DNA from: Macrostomum lignano
Lineage: Eukaryota
Assembly (NCBI GenBank): GCA_002269645.1
Contig: NIVC01004124.1
Span: 1-59,062 of the forward strand
Direction of reading: 5' to 3'
DNA: 59,062 nucleotides
How positions within the stretch are numbered: the first letter of the stretch is position 1; the number at the start of each line of letters is the position of its first letter. The position numbers were made by a program, and so were the translations under genes. The notes under the pieces are model-generated. The model saw nothing but the letters and a program-made list of their open reading frames with translations, did no database searches and had not been told where the DNA came from. Of this stretch, positions 12,335-50,052 are shown piece by piece.

Positions 12335-13530
12335 CCCGTCACCCATAAACCCTTCCCTACCCTCCGATCCGTCACCCATAAACCCTTCCCTACCCTCCGA
12401 TCCGTCACCCATAAACCCTTCCCTAATCCCTACCCTCCGATCCGTCACCCATAAACCCTTCCCTAATCCCTACCCTCCGATTCTTTACCCATGAACCCTT
12501 CCCTAATCCCTACCCTCCGATTCTTTACCCATAAACCCTTCCCTAATCCCTACCCTCCGATTCTTTACCCATAAACCCTTCCCTAATCCCTACCCTCCGA
12601 TTCTTTACCCATAAACCCTTCCCTAATCCCTACCCTCCGATTCTTTACCCATAAACCCTTCCCTAATCCCTACCCTCCGATCCGTCATCCATGAACCCTT
12701 CCCTAATCCCTACCCTCCGATTCTTTACCCATAAACTCTTCCCTAATCCCTACCCTCCGATCCGTCACCCATGAACCCTTCCCTAATCCCTACCCTCCGA
12801 TTCTTTACCCATAAACCCTTCCCTAATCCCTACCCTCCGATTCTTTACCCATAAACCCTTCCCTAATCCCTACCCTCCGATCCGTCACCCATGAACTCTT
12901 CCCTAATCCCTACCCTCCGATTCTTTACCCATAAACTCTTCCCTAATCCCTACCCTCCGATCCGTCACCCATGAACCCTTCCCTAATCCCTACCCTCCGA
13001 TTCTTTACCCATAAACCCTTCCCTAATCCCTACCCTCCGATCCGTCACCCATGAACCCTTCCCTAATCCCTACCCTCCGATCCGTCACCCATGAACTCTT
13101 CCCTAAACCCTACCCTCCGATCCGTCACCCACGAACCCTTCCCTAATCCCTACCCTCCGATCCGTCACCCATGAACCCTTCCCTAATCCCTACCCTCCGA
13201 TTATTTACCCATGAACCCTTCCCTAATCCCTACCCTCCGATCCGTCACCCATAAACCCTTCCCTAATCCCTACCCTCCGATTCTTTACCCATGAACCCTT
13301 CCCTAATCCCTACCCTCCGATTCTTTACCCATGAACCCTTCCCTAATCCCTACCCTCCGATCCGTCACCCATGAACCCTTCCCTAATCCCTACCCTCCGA
13401 TTCTTTACCCATAAACCCTTCCCTAATCCCTACCCTCCGATTCTTTACCCATAAACCCTTCCCTAATCCCTACCCTCCGATTCTTTACCCATAAACCCTT
13501 CCCTAATCCCTACCCTCTGATCCCTCACCT
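12335..13530. repeat. 40-bp C-rich minisatellite CCCATAAACCCTTCCCTAATCCCTACCCTCCGATTCTTTA
   Basis: About 29 copies; rows 120 nt apart are identical. Confidence 0.96.
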
Positions 13531-13615: not shown

Positions 13616-14020
13616 TTAATCAGTTTTGCTCCTCTCCGCAAGCTCCAACTGATTCAGATGCCGGGTCAAAGCGTCCAAGTCTAATTGATGCATCATGGTT
13701 GGCAGGCCGCGAATTTTAAACACGGGTATATCGTAGCGCCACACCTGATACCGCTCATTCTCTGGCAAGTCGATGTCAACCCGACGCAGTACAATCCGAC
13801 CAGCGTCGATCAAATGTTGAACCTCTTCAACCGCATCTTCGCACAGAGTGCAACCCGGCCGAGTATACATTGTTAGCACTGCTGGCTGTTCTGGCGAACT
13901 CTGATTCGGCTTGGAACTGGCGGCAAAAGAGCGACTGCTGCTGACCGATAGTAGCTGGGCAAACCGAGCAGCGCCGCCACCGCCACCGCTACTAACGTTT
14001 GAAATTAGTCTGCTGAAAAT
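13616..14020 (-). CDS. C5orf63: Glutaredoxin-like protein, C5orf63/YDR286C (DUF836) type, with putative mitochondrial presequence; no in-frame ATG at the 5' end of the exon
   Basis: VLTMYTRPGCTLCEDAVEEV (CxxC) ... RRVDIDLPENERYQVWRYDIPVFKI ... MMHQLD. The frame is open from 14020 (IFSRLISNVSSGGGGGAARFAQLLSVSSSRSFAASSKP, Arg/Ser-rich with no acidic residues) and is bounded upstream by TAG at 14023-14021. Confidence 0.85.
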   Translation of the reverse strand: MFSRLISNVSSGGGGGAARFAQLLSVSSSRSFAASSKPNQSSPEQPAVLTMYTRPGCTLCEDAVEEVQHLIDAGRIVLRRVDIDLPENERYQVWRYDIPVFKIRGLPTMMHQLDLDALTRHLNQLELAERSKTD

Positions 14021-14030
14021 CTAAATTTGG
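14021..14030 (-). promoter_or_regulatory. Candidate unpaired 3' splice (trans-splice) acceptor of the C5orf63-like gene
   Basis: CCAAATTTAG|ATT: the AG is directly followed by the first in-frame codon of the open frame. No upstream ATG-containing donor exon was found. Confidence 0.45.
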
Positions 14031-14684
14031 CGACAGCACTACTGTTAGTAGAAGGGTCTGCGATGTTAATAAAAATAACGTGATAGAAAAACCTGGCTTC
14101 GATTTCTGATATTTTACTGCCCCGAGGATAAAACTGTGGAGATTTCACTGAATTTTTCTGCTGAAAACAAAACTATCAACACTACTGCAAGTAGCTAAAA
14201 GGAACCCCAAAGACATCTATGACACTAAGCACTTAGAATTTGAATAAACAAAATAAAAACACAAAGAATGTTGAACTACAGATTTATAATAAAATAAACA
14301 TAGCAATTATAGTCAAAGTTATTTGTATTATTTCTATTCGTAATTTTTGTAAGAGTCAGACAGCGTTACAAGTTGCAAAAATATTACACAATGCAATTAT
14401 TTGGAAAAAAAATTGTCTCCAAATATATGGAGAATAGAAAATGCCTTATGACCCACAGTTTATCAATAAGCATGCAGAATACTAGATTATCAGCACGGTG
14501 GTTGCACTACTTAATAAAAGTAGCACTGTAACAGAATTAATTCCTTTTAAAAACATTTAGCTGCACCAGAACATTCAAGGAAAAGACTGGCTTCTTCTTC
14601 TTCAAGATCTTTCCCAGCGGAAAATAAACTGGTTAAACGAACATTCTGGAGACACAGCACTGAGTCACGACACAAGAAGATAGA

Positions 14685-14807
14685 GACAGACACACAGACA
14701 GAGAGACAGACACACAGACAGAGAGACATGCAGGCAGGCAGACAGACAGACACAGACAGAGAGACATGCAGGCAGGCAGACAGACAGACATACAGACAGA
14801 CAGACAT

Positions 14808-14838
<31 letters not shown>

Positions 14839-14839
14839 T

Positions 14840-14936
<97 letters not shown>

Positions 14937-14963
14937 TAGACAGACAGACATTAAGACAGACAT

Positions 14964-15030
<67 letters not shown>

Positions 15031-15098
15031 TACAGACAGACAGACAAACAGACAGACACACAGACAGACAGACAGACAGACATACAGACAGACAGACA

Positions 15099-15174
<76 letters not shown>

Positions 15175-15199
15175 CCAAGACAGACAGACAGACAGACAC

Positions 15200-15235
<36 letters not shown>
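14685..15235. repeat. (CAGA)n microsatellite between CDC16 and the C5orf63-like gene
   Basis: Directly visible. Confidence 0.95.
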
Positions 15236-15528: not shown

Positions 15529-16154
15529 TCAAATATCCATAGAAACGTCTTCCATATCGACACTTTCCACGCTGCCAGCCGACATGGTCAGCTGACGCTG
15601 CTGCTGCTGCTGCCGCAGTCGCATAGCAGAATTCGGCGTCTGTGTGGTAGCCGACTGCAGCCACCGACCGGACAGCGAGGCGCCGCTAGGAGATTCCATA
15701 GCCAACGACGCCGGTTTCCGGTCGGGCAGGTCTTGCCAGTTCATGGTTGGCAAACTGTCGCCCCGATCGCCTAGTAGACAGTCTAACCAGGGCAGGTGAG
15801 TCTCCGCCATCACTTCAACCAGTTTGCTGAGCAATTGCGAACTAAATTTATCGTCAGAGTTTAAACTAAGCGACCGGGTCAGGTGATCAACGGCTCGATC
15901 GAAATCGCCGTTTAAAGCGAACGCGTAGCCAAGAGCTGTCAGGGTGGCTGCGTTGCCGGGATACAGGGACCAGGCTCGCTGGTGGTGCTGGATGGCCTCA
16001 TCGTATCTGTGGTATTGAGAACAATAGCAGTAATAATATCCTGCTTACAAACTATCCGGTTGATTCTATACGTTTTACTGATCAGAATACTATAGCTACT
16101 ACTTATGGTAGTTATGGTATGTTATAGGAGAGGGTTTACTTATGGTATAGGAGA

Positions 16155-16201
<47 letters not shown>

Positions 16202-19200
16202 CAGTTGGTTGTGATTCAGTCAGACACCTCTAGATGCATGTTTAAATATGGTTCACCCGCTGAATGCATTTCTGCTGAGTGATGGCATTCATCGAGACCT
16301 CTACATCTCGCTTGAGCACTAACATGGGTAGCTGCTTGAGCCAAGTTTCTGTCAGCGACTTCACATTATATGGCCTAAATTTTGTTTCACTGCCGCTTTC
16401 AGTGCTGATTCTGCAGGATCCGATAAAGGGTGAATTTGGCGGCAGAAAGCGTCCGACATCTATAGCCGACCGACATCCCAGAAACGTCAAGATGAGCCCT
16501 TGCTTCATCTTTACAAATACAAATGCTCTCCATCATAGCATCGCTGAAAGACCTCCGTTTGACACCTCCTCGAGGCAAGATTCTCAATACGACCAGTTGT
16601 ATTAAACTGTCCAACTATGTGAGACACGGTTCTTCGTGCTCATGGGAAATTGCTGAGATGGGGGATAGCTGAAATCCTGCGACTCATGGGGGTGCTCAAA
16701 TGCATTGAGCCAAAGCTCATAAGGGATCTGATATCTTAAGCTAGACAGCTGGCTTTCAGGCCCATACTTTTTTGCTTGAACAATTTTACTTAACGATTAA
16801 AAAGTGACTTACAAGGTGCTAGTTTATACTATTATTGCTACTAATTTAAAGTACAAAAAGCAAACCTCTTCAATTTCCGGCAGGTGTGCCCGAGATTATT
16901 AAACACGGGCTCCCAGAATGAGCTGGGCATTTCGCCGGACAGTTCATCGATCCGGCCAACAGCCAGCCGGAATTGCTCCTCAGCCTTGGCATAGTCGCGC
17001 GCATTGAAATACGTAACTCCGCGCTCGTGCAATAAGAATGGATCGTTCGGGCACAGTTCAACAGCTTGATCAAAGAATTCGCTAGCCAATGGTAGATTAT
17101 TTGTGAGGCCGTACTCTAAGCCGATGTACAAGTAGGGCACGTGACTGCCCTGCATAGCCTGTATAGCCGTGGTGTAAGCAGCTATGGCCTGATCGTGCTC
17201 AGTGTCCTCAGCTAGAGCGTGGCCAAGAGCGATCCAACCAGGCCCGAAGTAGCGATTCATTCTGGTGCACTTCATCAAGTAGCTACAATGCGTGGGCGGA
17301 TTGTAGCTGAAGTGAACTAATTCGCAACTAGAGTGAACTAAGTCGCAACTAGAGTGAACTAAGTCGCAACTAGAGTGAACTAATTCGCGACTAGAGTGAA
17401 CTAATTCGCAACTAGAGTGAACTAATTCGCAACTAGAGTGAACTAAGTCGCAACTAGAGTGAACTAATTCGCAACTAAAGTGAACTAACTCGCAACTAGA
17501 GTGAACTAAGTCGCAAATAGAGTGAACTAAGTCGCAACTAGAGTGAACTAAGTCGCAAATAGAGTGAACTAAGTCGCAACTAGAGTGAACTAATTCGCAA
17601 CTAAAGTGAACTAACTCGCAACTAGAGTGAACTAAGTCGCAAATAGAGTGAACTAAGTCGCAACTAGAGTGAACTAAGTCGCAAATAGAGTGAACTAAGT
17701 CGCAGCGAGAGTGAACTAATTCGCAACTAAAGTGAACTAAGTCGCAAATAGAGTGAACTAAGTCGCAACTAGAGTGAACTAATTCGCAACTAGAGTGAAC
17801 TAAGTCGCAACTAGAGTGAACTAAAATTAAAAAAACAATTCTGACTAATCCCATCTGGCATCCTAGTTTTGAACTTTGGTATTCTAAACTTGGACTTTAG
17901 AAGATAGTTGAAACGCGCGACAGCCCATCCGCTGAGAATATAGGATATAGGAGTGCTTAAATGTCTAGGTCACGAGTGCACGAGTGTCATAGACATTTAA
18001 GCACTCAAAACCAAGTATTGATCCTATATTCTCAGCGGATGGGCTGCCGCGCGTTTCAACTATGTTCTAATGTACGCGTCTAGACTGAGACCGAGAAAGT
18101 CGCACACACTGCGTCTACTGGTAGTAGAAAGAATGAAATATTTAAACTCACCGTCTAGCCATCTCCTTGTCGTGTATGCACAGATAATAACAGCCAACAG
18201 CGTACCAAGAAATAGGCCTAGACGGATATAATTCAACTAGTTGATGCCCGAGCAAAAACAATTGATTATCTTTGCCTAATTCTTTCAAAGCGGCGATGTG
18301 CAATGGTAGGCAGAGATCGTTAAACGGATCGTTGGCCAATACGCTCGATGTTAATTGTTGGCATTCGTGGAAGTGGCACGCGTAGAAGTAGCGCTCAGCC
18401 AGGCTAGTTACCAGGTCGCCATTGTCCTGAATGAGATTAGGGATGGTATAAAAAGTTTTTTTTATCAATTTGTGCAATTATGCGCACCAACTCCCCATTC
18501 ACAATCACCAAGGCACAGGGCGTTGAGGTGCTATTTTTTACCTCAGAAAACAACAACAAAAAACGCTATGACTATGACTAGTCAGGGCCTTAATCCGTGA
18601 GATGGCCAATTTATTTCAGTGTGCACTAAAATCCACACCTTTTCAGTATGGATGAAAAAGTCAGGGCCGCTGTCTGCCTCCTGCCAACTAACAATAATGA
18701 TAATAGTATTTGCGTGAAGATTGTGGGCATCTTGGCGCCAACGCATTCGGTGACATTGTCCTACAATGAGTGCTGACGGCCACTCTGCACGTACACCCAC
18801 TCATACACACGCTCACACAGGGTGTACATCGACCCCAGGCCAAACCTGCTTTCAATTGAGCGAGCTCACCTTCAGCGCCACAATCGAGTCCGGCACTTCC
18901 AGCTCCTTTGGTGGGCCGTACTTATTAACCCGATTGCCGTACACCAGCTGCAGTAGCTTAGCCTCCTCGGGAGTCTGGCAGGCCTCATCAAAATGCAAAT
19001 TTGCTAATAGTTCGGCCTCCTCGGATGCGCGCAAATTCTGCGAACCGAATAGCGCTTCGAATGCTTCGTAGCAATAGGCATCTTTGCGCAGGGCGTCTAC
19101 AAAGCAGTGAACTGCGCGTGGCCTCACGCCCAGAGATTCGAACACGCGACCTCGTAGCAGAGCCAGCGAACCGGCAAGCGGACGGCATGGCAGACCGAAT

Positions 19201-21171: not shown

Positions 21172-24100
21172 TATTTTGCCAAGCCTCCAGTCCAAATCTC
21201 ATCATCACATCGACAAATGTGTCTGGAATTTGATCACTGGCCTTCACCCAAGCGCAGCTTCTAGACCTTCAACATGTAACATCAGGTGACTATGGACACC
21301 CTATTGTGTTATTAAAGTTCGCTATGGACACCCTATAGCAAACTTCAACTGCTAGACATCATCAGCTAGTCTTTCAAGCATTCTGTCATCATCTCAATGC
21401 TGTTGGAACTTTCAACAGATGCTACTAGATGATTACGGACACCACTTTGCTAATTTACTTGATTTTGCTGACCAAGCTTTAATAATGGGCAAACCTCAAC
21501 TGCTTAACATCCTTAGCGAGTCTTTCAAGCATTATATCATCACCTTGACGCCTGTGTCAGACAATGTTCTTGAATTTAATGTACTTATATTGCTCTGTTC
21601 TGGTGCAGCAAAACATTAATACCCCTCTTGGTAGTTTTACTGTTAATCCAAGTTCCATACTTATTTAGTAGCTTATAGTAACCTATTTATATATTATTTG
21701 AAGTATCAATAAGCATTTGGATTTCGAGATTTCTACTGATTGTAAAATTTGAATAATATATATCTATAAATAAGGAATCTGCAAACTTTTGCAACTTCTG
21801 TAGTTTAGAGAGGTGCAGCAATGTAAAAAGTATAAGTAAAGATTTTGATATGCTATTTAATTTGACTTTTTGATTGATGCTAAATTTCATTCTGGTTATT
21901 AATTTGGCACCTTGAATTTAGATAAAAAATGCTTATATAAAAGGCTCACTTATATATAAAATATTCTTCAAAATAAACTAATAGAATTAAAAATTGCTTT
22001 TCTAACAGATAAGCTTGGAAATGCCAAGGCAAATAGATTTTGTTTATTGTTGATAATTGAAAGGTTACTATAAATGCTTAATTTTAAGATTTATTTTTAC
22101 ACACTAAAATTTAAGAAAACAACTATATTAGCATTTTTATAAATATTTTTGATATTATTCTGCTACTTTATTTGTTGCCTTATAAATGGGGGCTGATTGC
22201 TATTTTCTACTAAAACAATAAATGATACTATATTATATAAATTATAATTATATAATTATAAATATGTCATGGCAACCTTTCTATTTAATTTGTTTTTGAA
22301 GCAGATGCCCAAATCAATGCTTAAAAGATATAAATTATTTCCTATCATCAAAATTTTATATATTTAGGATATCCATGTCCATGATGGATAAAATCACTAA
22401 AATGAAACTAGCAAATAACAAATAAGATTATACATATACTACTATAGAATTATTATGTCAGAAAATATAAAAACTTATCTTTTTAGTTCTTTTTAGGTTT
22501 TGATTAGGCCTATTGTCTACTCTATTTTGGTTTACTAAATATATATATAAACAAATGCATAAACTCTGAAACTATATTGGCTATGCAACTTGTTTTATTT
22601 TTTATTCTCTTTTCTTATTGTAAACAATGGCCATTTTATGGATAATATCTAATATAAAATAGCTTAGTGGTAATGTAGCAATGAAATGCAAAGGGAATAA
22701 AAAAGTTGCATATAAGGAATAAAAGGTAAGGGAGCTAAGGCAATATAGGAAGGCAAAAAAGGCTATGTTAAGCTGCAATATATCAAAGTAATCTAGATAT
22801 CTAATAAAAGAAAAAGGATTTCTAGTATTGTTTAGACCTTGCTTCAATAGGGTTCTCTTTTTTTGCTTTGCAATACCTTTTTGCCTTTTCCATTTTTGCT
22901 TTCCTAAACTATAAATTTTTGGCTTTTTGTTTCTTTATTTATTTTGAAATTTAGGCCTACCAAGTAATATTTATACTAAAAAATAATGGTAGGCCTAAGG
23001 CTTAATTACTAGTATAGAACAGAAAATTTTAACAATAGAAAACAAAAACTTTTTTTCTTACTCTAATTCAAAATAGCTAAAGAAAGATATTTAGAAATGG
23101 GCAACATTAGGCCTTAGGGCTAGGCCAAATTGATTTCTATTAATTTAATAATCTAACCTACTTATCTGCTTATACCATAGGATAGGCCTAGGGCCCAACT
23201 TTAAATTTGCAAGATAATATTATTTTCAATTGTCTTAATTAGTATAAAACATAGTATTAGGCCTTAGACTAGGCCAAAATTTTTAATAGGCCTATTTTAG
23301 AAATATTGAAAATAAAAATAGCTAGACCTAATCTCTAACTATAAAAATCAAAACTCTGTCTTTGTATTTGTTTACAATTTTATTTGCTATGGTTATAGAC
23401 TTCAAAACCACTCAACCAATATAGACATTTTTAATTACCTTTTAGGGGTTTGTGCACCTACAAAAACAGCTTTTCTAGGGTGAATGGGGGGCTCTAGCCA
23501 GCAAAGCCCCCTCCTCTGCATTTGCTACTGCTTAGGTGTATAGCCAGTATATATACTTTTAACAAGTTAATTGAATTAGCAAAAATCAATGCAAATTTGG
23601 CTGCAATTCACTTGTAGATCATGACTAGGAAACTAAGAAATACTATAAATACAAAGATTTAAGATCCACTATATTAGAGAGTGCAATGCAAAACTTATAA
23701 TTAGGTAGAACCAGGCAAAAAAACATATTGTCTATATAGGCAAAGAGGTATTATACTTCCAAATTTGCACCTTTGATAAGCAAAGAAATTTGCACCATAT
23801 CTTTAGAATTTGTGCTTTTGCGCCTATGACAATCAAATTTATGCCAGGTGCAAATTTGCACTTGTCGACTTGACTCTAAAGACTATTTAAGTCTTCTTAC
23901 CTAAAAAGTGCAAAAAAACTGCTTAAACATGTGATTTTTTCACTAAATTCTCTATAGGCCTAGTGTTACTTTAGTTTTACCAATCTTCTTTAAATTTGAC
24001 ACAATCAATTTTTTTATATTTTGACACAATTACCTAAAATTTTGAGGTTCAAAGTCAGTCTTGAATGGCATTGTGCACTTTAAGTTAGTCTGCTTTTTTT

Positions 24101-24328
24101 AGCATAGCAACCACTTTAACCTTTATCTTTTTCTCTTTCAATCCCTGGCCTTATGTGGCTAGATGTAGAAAAAAGGGTTTCAAAACTGACTAACTTTGGC
24201 TATTATAAGTTTGCTTTACATAAAGTGATTGACTTCAATTTTGACACAATTCTTCATTGACTTATTCCCTAACTAAATGTAAATTCTCAACTCTGTAACT
24301 CAATCAAGACAGAAATTGTGGCATAGGC

Positions 24329-24803
24329 CAGCCTTATCTTAGTTTCTTGCATTAAATTATTTTGAGTTAAAAATTGACTCAATAAGTTAAAACAAGTTAG
24401 GCCTAGTCCATAGTAATCAATAGTCTGCTGAGCTTACTAAATCACATAATAATGGGCAACCCAAAACAAGAAGTTGCCAAAGGTCGAAGAATTTCTCTAG
24501 GTAAAGGTGATACCAGAGGTCTCATTCAAGTGTGAATTGAATAAGTTATCACTGGTGCCATATATGTTCTTGAACTTTGCCTTGACATGCGCCCAAGTCC
24601 TTTCAATGGCATTCATATGCAAATGCAAAGTTCTTAGTTTCTAACTAGTTTTGGATTGCTCATTATTATGCTAGGGCCTATGCCATTTAGTGAGCTCAGT
24701 AGACTATCAATTGAGTGCTATCGATTATGGACTAACTTGTTTTAACTTATTGAGTCCATTTTTAACTCAAAATAATTTTATGTGGGAAACTAGGATAATG
24801 CTG
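24329..24803. mobile_element. Degenerate foldback/MITE-like element with ~135-bp imperfect inverted arms
   Basis: 24329-24466 is the imperfect reverse complement of ~24648-24803 (e.g. AATTATTTTGAGTTAAAAATTGACTCAATAAGTTAAAACAAGTTAG vs CTAACTTGTTTTAACTTATTGAGTCCATTTTTAACTCAAAATAATT). Confidence 0.6.
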
Positions 24804-26085
24804 AAATTGTAAACATGTGAATTTTGTCTGCTTTTTCTATTGTCATATTTATTTACTAATAGGGGCCTGATAGTGATATTGTCACATTAATCAATGATAT
24901 ACAAAAATTAATATGGGCGAAAGGTCTTTAATTAATTCATATTATTTTGGGTCTATCTATAGTAGGCTAAGCCTAGGCCTAGATTAGGCAATTAAGTCAA
25001 GTCAGTTATTTTGCATGCAAACATAGTCATACTGCTCTGCTCTAGTTTTTGGGTTACAATTTAATGCAGAATAAGGCCAAGCTGTCGATAAGACGTTAAG
25101 CCTATGCTGACTTGACAGTTAAGAAGTAATTAATTTTTGTTAACTGCATTAAAAAGGCTCCCCTAGTGGGCGAGGAGCTGAGCTATACGATAGGACTAAC
25201 TAGCCATGCAGATATTGCAGCAATCATAGACCTAACGTGACAAAAGTCGTATTTTAAAGTACAGTTTTATTCATTTTAACAGATGACTTGCAATTTTTAA
25301 GAAGATAACGTGAGTATGCGCGTAAATCAGAACATATGACCTAGAGTTTTCTTTATTAAACATAAAAAAGACTATACTAACAACAATTATTACGTGTCTT
25401 TAGAAATGCGCAAAAAGTTTTGGCTCTAATTCAATTTTTTACTCTGCGTTCTAGCTTAATTTTAGAACACATCGCCCGCTGGCATTACTGCAAATCACCT
25501 GAATTTTCACGCACTCGTCTATACCCTATACCTTCCTACTGTTTCCGGCTTATAAGCAAAGTCGAACGTATATTTGGTTAGTAAACATGTAGAAAGAGTT
25601 TGAATTCTTTACAAACTCTTTTTCGGTTTTTGTACATCTTTACGGCTATTTACAACATGCTCAAACGTTTGGTTGCAATTTAGTAGTAACAACCTACGAT
25701 AATAATTTCTCATTCCTAGCAAATATTGTAGTTTGAGGCTATAGTTTTTTTTCTTACATTTAATGCCTACTGCAGAAGCTCTAGTTTACTATAATATGAA
25801 TTTTAGCTTTATTAATTCTCATGTGATTCCTGTCATATTTGAATTAGTATCATTCAACGCAATATAATTTTATAGTAGAATAAGTTTAACTAACTTCAAG
25901 CGTTTTCAGTATGTTTTATAAGACTTAATAAAAATAGCTTCAAAATTGGATGCGAAATACCAAAATTGCACATGGTATTAGTATTACGTAATGAATTTGA
26001 GAATTTTTAATACTTAAAAATCTACTTGCTTCTTCAGCATGACGATCCAGAAGTAACATTACAGACTTTAAAAAACATAGCCAGC

Positions 26086-47200: not shown

Positions 47201-50052
47201 CAATAAGAAATCGGTCATTCAAGAATCGGTCATTCAAGAAATCGGTCATTCAAGAATCGGTCATTCAAGAAATCGGTCATTCAAGAAATCGGTCATTCAA
47301 GAAATCGGTCATTCAAGAAATCGGTCATTCAAGAAATCGGTCATTCAAGAATCGGTCATTCAAGAAATCGGTCATTTAAGAAATCGGTCATTCATGAAAT
47401 CGGTCATTCAAGAAATCGGTCATTCAAGAATCGGTCATTCAAGAAATCGGTCATTCAAGAAATTGGTCATTCAAGAATCGGTCATTCAAGAATCGGTCAT
47501 TCAAGAAATTGTCATTCAAGAATCGATCATTCAAGAAATCGATCATTCAAGAAATCGGTCATTCAAGAAATTGGTCATTCAAGAAATCGGTCATTCAAGA
47601 AATTGGTCATTCAAGAAATCGGTCATTAATCAGGCTACCAAGTCACAGACCTGAGCCCGCATGCAGCGGATGAGCAGGCGCGGACACCGGACAGACTGGC
47701 TAGCCGACAGGCAGACGGATAGGCTGTCCGAATAAGAATAGAATGTCACGGACAGCCGGACGGGCTCGGACGCGGGGAACCAGAAGCAGACGCCGTCAAC
47801 CGGACAGCCGTCCAGCCACAGCGGGCCGGCCGGGCCGGGCAGGCACAGCGCCAAGCAGCTGGCCCTGTCCGTGTGCAGCCGGACAGCCCGGCTGGCCAAG
47901 CCGGCCGGCAGAGCGCAGAACATCAGCGAGTCCACCAGGCGGACAGCGCGAAACCGGGCCTCGGCTCGGAGTTCGGCGAGGCGAGCCCGAAGCTGCCAGA
48001 GCTGCGGCAGCATGCCTTCGACGCTGACTGGCAGCCGCACAGTGGACAGCGCGTAGCGACTGCCCAGGCGGCCGGCGGCCTCGCCACCGCCAAGGTCGAC
48101 AGCCAGGGCGGCGCGGCAGTCGGGCGGGTGCGGCAGGCCCAGCAGCTGATTGTAGGAGCGCAGCGCCCCGGTCAGCAGCAGCAGGCAGGCATCATTAAGG
48201 CTGGTCCGAGTCACCTGGCGGACGCGCCACACCTGGCGGGCGTCGAGACTCGCCCGAAGCTGCGCCGGCCGCCGCCGCCTGGCCAACCTCTGCGGGCCGC
48301 CGTGCAGTGGGTTGCAGTCCGGCCGGCCCAGCAGGTAGTGCAGCAGCAGCACCGATGGCGCCAGGAAGAGGCAGCGGGCCTCCTCGAGCAGGCCGGCCGC
48401 TGTGACTCCGGGCTGCTGCGCCGCCGCTGCCGAGGTTGCTGCCGAATTTGTCGCCAACGTGGACGCCACATCGTGTGCTGGCGAGTCGCAGAGAGCGCCG
48501 GACAGCAAGCGGGTCATGCTGAGGCCGTCGGCGAAGCTCGGGTGCTGCCTGTAGACCAGCAGGGCGTCGCCCGCCGAACCGTAGGCGGCCTGGAACTGCA
48601 GCTCCAGAGCGGGCGGTCGCGCGCGAACGGGCGAGCCGTCGCCGAGGCCAAGAAGGCGGACAGGTCGGCGGGGCCGCGCAGTCGCGGTTGGATCTCGCGG
48701 ACATGATCATCTAAGCTGAAGGTGGTGTCGGTTGCCCAAACTGGGCCTGCGCAGGTGTCCTGCAATCGGTAATATAGGTGGTAGAAAAGGTTTAAAAAAG
48801 TTTCTAACACACTGAAACCATCGTATTCTTTCCGCCACCCAACTCCCCCTGGAAACCGCCTCACTCCTCCTGCACAGCCACTCTCACTCCTCCTGCACAG
48901 CCACCTCACTCCTCCTGCACAGCCACCTCACTCCTCCTGCACAGCCACTCTCACTCCTCCTGCACAGCCACCTCACTCCTCCTGCACAGCCACCTCACTC
49001 CTCCTGCACAGCCACCTCACTCCTCCTGCACAGCCACCTCACTCCTCCTGCACAGCCACCTCACTCCTCCTGCACAGCCACCTCACTCCTCCTGCACAGC
49101 CACCTCACTCCTCCTGCACAGCCACCTCACTCCTCCTGCACAGCCACCTCACTCCTCCTGCACAGCCACCTCACTCCTCCTGCACAGCCACCTCACTCCC
49201 CCTGGAAACCCCCCACTCCCCCTACACAGCCACCCCACTCCTCCTGCACAGCCACCTCACTCCCCGTACACAGCCACCTCGCTCCCCCTGCACAGGCAAC
49301 CAGCCGTCCCAACAGACCTCGACACGCTGGCTAAATCTTGGATAGCGCCTCTCGCCAGATTTATCCTCGGCGCCGATCACTCGCTGGCCGACCAGCTGAC
49401 GCAGCCGAGCCAGCGTCAGACCGCCGCCGGTACTGCCGCCGTTATTTCGCACGTCCAGTCGAGCTACAACGGCTCTGGCGTCCCGGCGGAACCAGGCGAG
49501 CTCCCTGTGGCTCAGCGGAGTCTTGCCGAACGCGCCGGCAGCTAGTCGGAGGCAGGCCAGCGGCAGGCAGGCCATGCAGGCCAGCGCCAGCAGCGGCAGG
49601 CAGAGGAGCGACAGACCGGCGTAGCGCAGCACCCAGCTGCAGAGCTCGGCTGCCGGGTTCTGCTCGGTGGGGTGCCGGACGCTGCACGGCTCGGACAGAG
49701 TCGGGTAGTGCAGCCCGAGCCCGCCGCCGTTCATCAGCTCCTCTTCCTCCTCGGCGTCCTCCTCGTCGTCAATTTCTTCGTCGGCTTCGTCCTCCTCGGC
49801 GACGTAGGTCTCCAAGTCATCCTCGCCGAGCTCTGCAGGATCTGTTGTCTCCGCCGCCACCGCCGCCGCTGCCGCCGCCGTCTCGCCGTCCAGCTGGTCA
49901 ACTTCGTCAACGAATTCTTGTTGAAGACGGCGATGTTGATAAGGAGCTCCTCCTCCACCGGCGCCGTTGATCCGCTCCGGCTCTGTCCACAATGGTTTTG
50001 TCGCGTCGACAGTCGAATCCGACGCCGATGCGGCCGACGCTAGACGGGACAT
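44273..50052 (-). CDS. WS/DGAT-family (wax ester synthase/diacylglycerol acyltransferase) protein, ~842 aa, with acidic N-terminus, hydrophobic helix and long C-terminal tail
   Basis: Exons 50052-49318, 48759-47651, 44956-44273, both junctions phase 0 (RVE|DTC; RAQ|AAA). Motifs: RYPRFSQRV, FSLDDHV, PFARDRPLW(E), LVYRQHPSFADGLS (HHxxxDG-like), TSLNDACL, RLGSRYALSTVRLP, LPGPAGPLWLDG, LSVTFYSYSDSLSV. Frameshift at 48604-48605, repaired by one extra G. Confidence 0.85.
45055..45420. repeat. 66-bp tandem repeat, ~5.5 copies, in WS/DGAT intron 2
   Basis: AGCTGATTGG recurs at 45121 and 45187. Confidence 0.93.
46272..46622. repeat. 21-bp minisatellite ATACCTGTCCTATGCAACATT
   Basis: About 16 copies. 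Confidence 0.95.
47193..47628. repeat. 16-bp minisatellite GAAATCGGTCATTCAA
   Basis: About 27 copies, beginning ~20 nt from the donor at 47650. Confidence 0.95.
48860..49290. repeat. 22-bp minisatellite CACTCCTCCTGCACAGCCACCT
   Basis: About 18 copies filling WS/DGAT intron 1. Confidence 0.95.

Follow-up and report, generated by a model that had tools for sequence, protein, structure and literature searches.

A conserved glutaredoxin-like gene of Macrostomum lignano without a genomic start codon for its presequence-like extension, and the spliced leader as a plausible source of one

Initiation at an AUG carried by the spliced leader (SL) has been established in flatworms since the work of Cheng et al. 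(2006, as cited in PMC9851317 and PMC12582326). The closest described precedents are the flatworm slORFs (Cheng, Cohen, Ndegwa & Davis 2006, J Biol Chem; as presented in PMC9851317), in which an SL ending in AUG is joined to a conserved open reading frame that has no AUG in cis; by that account 28% of S. mansoni trans-spliced cDNAs have the SL AUG in frame, and more than 40 need it. Macrostomum lignano possesses a single 35-nt SL, CGGTCTCTTACTGCGAAGACTCAATTTATTGCATG, whose 3' end (…TTATTGCATG) closes with ATG (PMC8629364), and which is present on 30-39% of its genes (PMC8629364, PMC5730564). The top trans-splice acceptor motif of this species is [T/C]TNCAG, and its cis donors are mostly GT[G/A]AG (PMC8629364, PMC5730564). 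The choice among neighbouring acceptors has been described in trypanosomes, where alternative trans-splicing at close SL acceptors alters the N-terminus or targeting signal of the protein (Nilsson et al. 2010, PMC2916883); the trypanosome SL carries no initiator, and acceptor choice there includes or excludes a genomic AUG.

Here, we analyze a conserved glutaredoxin-like gene in contig NIVC01004124.1 of the M. lignano assembly Mlig_3_7 (GCA_002269645.1), the whole of which (59,062 bases) forms the window, and confirm that this gene has no cis start codon for its presequence. An earlier note on this DNA had proposed that an SL joined at position 14020 starts the protein, on the premise that flatworm SLs end in AUG and that this AUG can initiate. 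The premise holds: the M. lignano SL does end in ATG, so that the case the note had named as contrary to its reading, a species with no such leader, is not this one, and initiation has the precedent of Cheng et al. as cited above. As in the slORFs, an SL joined at a phase-0 AG would complete the open reading frame. In S. mansoni the in-frame junction has been seen in cDNAs, by the account in PMC9851317, whereas for the M. lignano gene the in-frame site is predicted, and the junctions that its models imply put the SL AUG out of frame. Close acceptors would alter the N-terminus or targeting signal as in trypanosomes, except that the SL would bring the AUG and acceptor choice would set its phase. 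The locus also contains a CAGCAG of the kind known from NAGNAG tandem acceptors, here in trans- rather than cis-splicing; both variants fall in the 5' leader, where the difference amounts to one codon of a uORF and the protein is unaffected. An SL-supplied initiator methionine has thus been known in flatworms since 2006, at least as that work is cited, and the 14020 case is at best another example.

The open frame and its protein family

On the minus strand, 134 codons and a TAA stop (13618-13616) are open from 14020, immediately after an in-frame TAG (14023-14021) that is followed by ATT TTC AGC AGA CTA; the frame reads IFSRLISNVSSGGGGGAARFAQLLSVSSSRSFAASSKPNQSSPEQPAVLT-MYTRPGCTLC… (Table 1). 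The earlier note's description of this frame, open from 14020 with no ATG before 13870, was borne out by the sequence, as was its statement that the nearest upstream ATG (14216) runs into a stop: that frame closes at TGA 14147-14145, and a scan of the minus strand from 14216 to 14020 found no ATG between these positions. Its further argument, that the bounding TAG supplies a phase-0 AG, is correct as to sequence but carries little weight alone, because open frames are always bounded by a stop and about one-third of stops are TAG.

The gene is the M. lignano orthologue of the glutaredoxin-like protein C5orf63 (DUF836 family), and its closest solved structure is mouse 1WJK. The Pfam Glrx-like match has an E-value of 1.6e-11 and 44.8 bits (cut-off 26), the named relatives are entered as 'glutaredoxin-like protein C5orf63 homolog', and a profile of 24 family members matches PDB 1WJK, the structure of the mouse C5orf63 homologue, with E = 1.9e-41. 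An AlphaFold (AF2) model built from the 24-sequence alignment places strands at residues 47-53, 76-82, 100-103 and 106-110 and helices at 58-72, 86-93 and 115-133, with pLDDT of about 76-92 across the domain and disorder over residues 1-41. Alignment and model together contain both a CxxC following beta1, in which C57 and C60 are invariant across the homologues, and a thioredoxin-like beta-alpha-beta-alpha-beta-beta-alpha fold. These features, and a length of about 120-140 aa, are common to the family (PF05768; mouse C330018D20Rik, PDB 1WJK; yeast Mgp12/YDR286C), whose members also share with the M. lignano gene an N-terminal extension bearing an R-x-[F/L] motif. Within Macrostomum, the homologue search returned only the M. 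lignano protein itself, and orthologues from other Macrostomum were not among the matches.

Most sampled homologues start with their own Met, and the M. lignano gene differs from them in having none; the exceptions are two entries without an initial Met, at least one of them a partial record, and one that starts with Val. As the earlier note had claimed, the first genomic in-frame ATG falls inside the first beta-strand: in the AlphaFold model, Met51 is residue 5 of the 7 in beta1 (aa 47-53, AVLTMYT). The family consensus here is Leu, and its replacement by Met in M. lignano creates a misleading internal ATG. The window reads PAVLTMYTR where homologues read LPVLTLYTK, and because homologues share the V-L-T ahead of Met51, the residues upstream of ATG 13870 are conserved coding sequence.

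Table 1. Features of the glutaredoxin-like gene and its 5' region in the window
Feature	Position	Strand	Remarks
Complete open frame	13616..14020	-	134 codons + TAA; presequence-like extension + Glrx-like domain
Glrx-like domain PF05768, aa 49-122	13655..13876	-	Pfam; CxxC (C57-T-L-C60) at 13841-13852
GenBank CDS for the contig, 130 aa, 5'-partial, starts LISNV	13616..14008	-	locus L004 10001-10393 = 14008-13616
50-codon extension without ATG	13871..14020	-	no acidic residue before Glu44; 3 Arg, 1 Lys; Ser/Ala/Gly-rich
R30-S31-F32 codons	13925..13933	-	aligned with R-x-[F/L] column of homologue N-terminal extensions
First genomic in-frame ATG (Met51), inside strand beta1	13868..13870	-	context ACAATGT
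In-frame GTG (Val48), possible near-cognate start	13877..13879	-	would keep beta1
In-frame TAG with candidate phase-0 acceptor TTTAG/ATT, exon start 14020	14021..14023	-	AG = 14022-14021
TTTTCAGCAG, tandem NAGNAG acceptors, exon starts 14012 and 14009	14010..14019	-	fits species motif [T/C]TNCAG; annotated 5' ends agree
uORF from SL AUG at 14012 (MQTNFKR, stop) or 14009 (MTNFKR, stop)	13992..14012	-	stop TAG 13994-13992
TACTAAC, perfect branch-site consensus	14044..14050	-	branch A 14045; putative branch site
Second TTTTCAGCAG copy, possible alternative acceptor	14158..14167	-	SL AUG there opens out-of-frame ORF
Nearest upstream ATG (14216) and its 23-codon frame	14145..14216	-	TGA overlaps weak donor-like CA/GTGAAA, GT at 14148-14147

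Spliced-leader junctions, gene models and other possible starts

In GenBank and UniProt this gene is entered as 5'-partial, without a start codon; evidently its annotators, like the earlier note, were faced with an open reading frame that has no start. In addition to the CDS in the window, PAA61177.1 and PAA71970.1 ('BOX15_Mlig027778g2, partial'), from two other copies of the gene, start RLISS, and UniProt A0A1I8IG53, apparently a separate annotation that we infer to derive from an older assembly, starts LISSV. The first full codons, at 14011 or 14008, fit transcript starts at 14012 and 14009, right after TTTTCAG and the next CAG; 3 nt separate the annotated 5' ends of different gene copies or models. 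Mlig_3_7 was annotated with the TBONE pipeline, which cuts.g1/.g2 genes from transcriptional units at SL-read signals and takes ORFs from TransDecoder (PMC5730564). The g2 tag therefore indicates that the 5' boundary of this gene was set by an SL signal, and the tag together with a 5'-partial CDS that starts 1 nt after consensus AG acceptors identifies the gene, indirectly, as SL trans-spliced. A search of papers and their supplements found no mention of Mlig027778. The 220-aa A0A1I8IG53 agrees with the Glrx-like sequence as far as …ENERYQ, beyond which it is unrelated; the divergence point fits a cryptic donor CAG/GTGTGG (13743-13744, minus strand, inside the domain) spliced to a downstream exon. 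Either the model is mis-spliced or chimeric, or it represents a real isoform in which the fold is destroyed.

Neither junction implied by the available models (14012, 14009) puts the SL AUG in phase. Joined at 14012 (…TTGCATG/CAGACTAAT), the leader is out of frame and reads AUG CAG ACU AAU UUC AAA CGU UAG, a 7-codon uORF; joined at 14009 (…TTGCATG/ACTAATTTC), it is likewise out of frame and opens a 6-codon uORF, and the shared stop lies 122 nt before ATG 13870. These are the mRNA ends that the earlier note had named as its 'untargeted' alternative. An SL joined at 14020 (…TTGCATG/ATTTTCAGC) yields one unbroken 135-aa ORF, MIFSRLISNV…, and 14020 is the sole site at which the SL AUG opens the full precursor. 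A 14020 junction would have given IFSRL… or MIFSRL…, but the three independent 5'-partial gene models all start elsewhere, and in an exact look-up of the protein collection the MIFSRL…, IFSRL…, SL-read-through and GTG-start forms were absent, with only the two GenBank forms present. The protein cluster of the gene in that collection contains no RNA-seq-assembly members, and the 'peak' choice of TBONE is described too loosely to exclude a minor or even sizeable 14020 signal (PMC5730564). The proposal that an SL at 14020 starts the protein is only partly supported, since the models point to the out-of-frame junctions at 14012 and 14009. The earlier note had considered its reading incompatible with SL reads joining only at 14012, a situation that the models approach without reaching it; what they reveal is which sites are used, rather than that 14020 never is.

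The arrangement of the acceptors is compatible with use of 14020. The acceptor AGs for exon starts 14020, 14012 and 14009 lie 24, 32 and 35 nt downstream of TACTAAC, and the AGs 3 and 6 nt past its branch A are too near for use, leaving the TAG at 14022-14021 as the next AG. The 14020 acceptor is a YAG, and no other AG far enough from the perfect TACTAAC for use precedes it; as a site it appears mechanistically reasonable. The TTTTCAG of the 14012 site agrees with the top trans-splice motif whereas TTTAG does not. Under the first-AG rule known from yeast and mammals, the TAG at 14022-14021 should compete well; if acceptors are chosen by a U2AF-type preference, as [T/C]TNCAG implies, it should not. 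The 10-mer TTTTCAGCAG occurs twice in the 59 kb, 148 nt apart and both times upstream of or at the 5' end of this gene, against 0.32 occurrences expected (3 of 100 shuffles reach two). The upstream copy may be a second trans-splice acceptor; an SL AUG joined there would open an out-of-frame ORF that closes at TAA 14007-14005. An Rfam scan of the window gave no match, and no SL RNA gene lies in the window.

The mRNAs implied by the models could also be translated from a codon other than AUG. Non-AUG starts are known for mitochondrial isoforms of dual-localized proteins in other eukaryotes, and initiation here might use AUU 14005-14003 or, on the 14012 form, near-cognates inside the SL. The in-frame AUU exists, and in the 14012 form no stop interrupts the main frame across the SL (…TQFIAC-RLISN… when the SL is joined to the window sequence). 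AUU is, however, a weak near-cognate in poor context, the 14009 junction creates an in-frame UGA (GCA UGA CUA), and such initiation is not known from M. lignano; we consider it improbable. We regard it as extremely improbable that the SL AUG at 14012 or 14009 is really in frame and is masked by an assembly error of one inserted or deleted nucleotide within the first ~20 nt of the exon. Mlig_3_7 is a long-read assembly and one copy of the gene shows several 1-nt homopolymer differences nearby, but the four copies, each assembled independently, differ by a single A/G substitution over the 18 nt from 14012 to the uORF stop.

A start codon could instead be supplied in cis, by a mini-exon running from ATG 14216 to 14149 whose donor, CA/GTGAAA, is spliced to 14012 or 14009 to give MSLGFLLATCSSVDSFVFSRKI(H-R/Q)LISNV…. 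Splicing from the donor-like site at 14148 would keep the frame with both annotated acceptors, the putative 68-nt exon is identical in all four copies while its flanks differ slightly, and flatworm cis- and trans-splicing often share acceptors (PMC12582326). Against these points, the donor has no G at either -1 or +5 and departs from GT[G/A]AG, the ATG context is poor, the exon is absent from all models, and any GT would be in phase with one acceptor phase by chance in two of three cases; moreover, an SL would be needed for the cap if the gene is downstream in an operon. Such an exon is therefore very improbable. A systematic enumeration of upstream cis exons produced 657 formal ATG-GT-acceptor solutions, mostly in (GTCT)n, among which only the pair ATG 14216/GT 14148 stood out, with its poor donor.

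In M. lignano, an operon has been defined by a same-strand upstream gene, a repeat-adjusted distance below 1 kb and SL trans-splicing of the downstream gene. The upstream gene here encodes a 657-aa TPR/ANAPC3-domain protein; its CDS ends at 15529, which leaves a gap of 1.5 kb that includes 551 nt of (GTCT)n. This (AGAC)n/(GTCT)n microsatellite, at 14684-15234 between the two genes (~138 copies), yields spurious long ORFs, such as 288 aa of CLSV repeats, as well as most of the formal upstream-exon solutions. A 337-aa minus-strand ORF at 16841-17854, within the span of the TPR/ANAPC3-domain gene, consists of ~25 tandem 8-aa units (CDLVHSSC/ELVHSSC) followed by TPR-like sequence, and probably arose because the ORF finder read through an intronic minisatellite. 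On the other side of the glutaredoxin-like gene, ~95 nt past its stop codon, lies a 40-nt minisatellite (12387-13521; 28.4 copies, 93% matches, unit TCCCTACCCTCCGATTCTTTACCCATAAACCCTTCCCTAA on the plus strand) whose copy number and unit vary between paralogous loci and which accounts for a GC skew of -0.54 in the 12-14 kb bin. Elsewhere in the window, two blocks, at 22001-26000 and 48001-50000, contrast in composition, one AT-rich (GC 0.28-0.33) and the other GC-rich (GC 0.665), against a background of ~0.5.

The N-terminal extension and the copies of the gene

Whether the models' junctions suffice depends on what the 50 codons ahead of Met51 are. If only 14012 and 14009 were used, the gene would produce a short untargeted glutaredoxin-like protein, and the presequence-like extension would be a relic 5' UTR that has not yet decayed. 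Ribosomes would bypass the SL AUG, which has a weak context (U at -3), or reinitiate after the 6-7-codon uORF, and would start at AUG 13870, in the good context ACAAUGU, or at GUG 13879. The annotated 5' ends agree with this account, the uORF geometry is suited to reinitiation, and bacterial family members of ~80-90 aa lack the extension altogether. Starting at Met51, however, would cost 4 of the 7 beta1 residues in the AlphaFold model, including the conserved V-L-T, and the sampled eukaryotic homologues that have an initial Met all have it upstream of beta1.

The composition of the extension is also improbable for a UTR. A 50-codon open frame is by itself unremarkable, since shuffling this stretch yields one 13% of the time and 22% of all 150-nt frames in the repeat-rich window are open, but the acid-free composition with four basic residues is found in about 4% of open frames of such length, and the two are jointly expected by chance in well under 1%. 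Most homologues carry R-x-[F/L] in the alignment column of R30-S-F32, about 10-15 residues before beta1; this motif presumably corresponds to an R-3-type processing-peptidase motif, the usual look of a matrix-processing-peptidase site. Family extensions vary widely in length, from a few residues to about 100, behind their own Met. Taken together, the composition, the conserved VLT and the aligned R-x-[F/L] make it very unlikely that the extension is accidental, and argue that in all probability it is a genuine presequence or has only very recently ceased to be one. The earlier note had described an Arg/Ser-rich, acid-free mitochondrial presequence: the alignment and the predicted disorder mark the extension as typical of the family, and the protein is presumably mitochondrial.

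Comparison of the four genomic copies, ~99% identical over 1.4 kb, bears on the same question. The extension is free of ATG in all four; between copies it has 3 non-synonymous and 2 synonymous changes and one 3-nt indel, while the domain has synonymous changes only and no non-synonymous ones. The faster change of the extension favors a relic UTR, but at ~99% identity the copies are too close to measure selection, and constraint on the extension is at most weak or untestable from them. A further point on that side comes from copy L001 (NIVC01000525.1), where a 1-nt deletion (CGCCAG to CG-CAG, window ~13893) breaks the extension frame ~30 nt upstream of the ATG; L001 is also the sole copy annotated as complete from the internal ATG, with 84 aa. 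Since A0A1I8IG53 has the neighboring substitution of L001 with the frame intact, the deletion is private to L001 or an assembly error. On balance, we judge a relic extension with exclusive use of 14012 and 14009 to be doubtful. L001, which also shows the homopolymer differences mentioned above in its upstream non-coding DNA, may be in decay, or its differences may reflect errors of the long-read assembly. The nucleoporin (Nucleoporin_N/C) gene downstream, from the 15306-equivalent onwards in L004, has 1,092 residues there versus 1,328 on the paralogous contigs L001 and L002; gene models therefore differ between near-identical copies.

Acceptor choice and its consequences

The best explanation of the locus is a single-exon, SL trans-spliced gene whose coding sequence extends 50 codons upstream of its sole genomic in-frame ATG. 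A start supplied by the leader is plausible from the sequence, and initiation at an SL AUG joined at 14020 would be the most economical route to translating the extension, a reading that we favor with some reserve. We propose that mRNAs with the SL at 14012 or 14009, where the SL AUG would be out of frame, yield at best an N-terminally truncated, untargeted 84-aa product from AUG 13870, and that the full-length, presumably mitochondrial protein would come from an unannotated isoform in which the SL is joined 8 nt further upstream, at TTTAG/ATT, so that the AUG falls in frame and opens the 135-aa precursor. This in-frame isoform, probably a minor one, is tentatively the most likely source of the targeted protein.

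Three AG acceptors within 11 nt might further act as a switch that sets whether the protein is made and where it is sent, an idea that we think somewhat unlikely. At the first acceptor, 14020, the AUG would be in frame and would give the mitochondrial precursor, with a start codon that exists only in trans; at 14012 and 14009, the same AUG would open a short uORF, leaving at most the truncated protein.

If 14020 goes unused, the locus would pose a small puzzle, a conserved presequence that cannot be translated from any AUG of the annotated mRNAs. For annotation, a Macrostomum model marked '5'-partial' where an SL joins may encode a complete protein, and pipelines that trim the SL ATG will systematically miss such starts; in the M. 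cliftonense and M. hystrix assemblies the SL ATG was left in place on purpose by the authors, for an annotation reason akin to this one (PMC10468722). If 14020 is used, a transgenesis-ready flatworm would offer a conserved organellar protein whose initiator and targeting peptide are supplied only by trans-splicing, with a start that would be tunable through acceptor choice over 8-11 nt.
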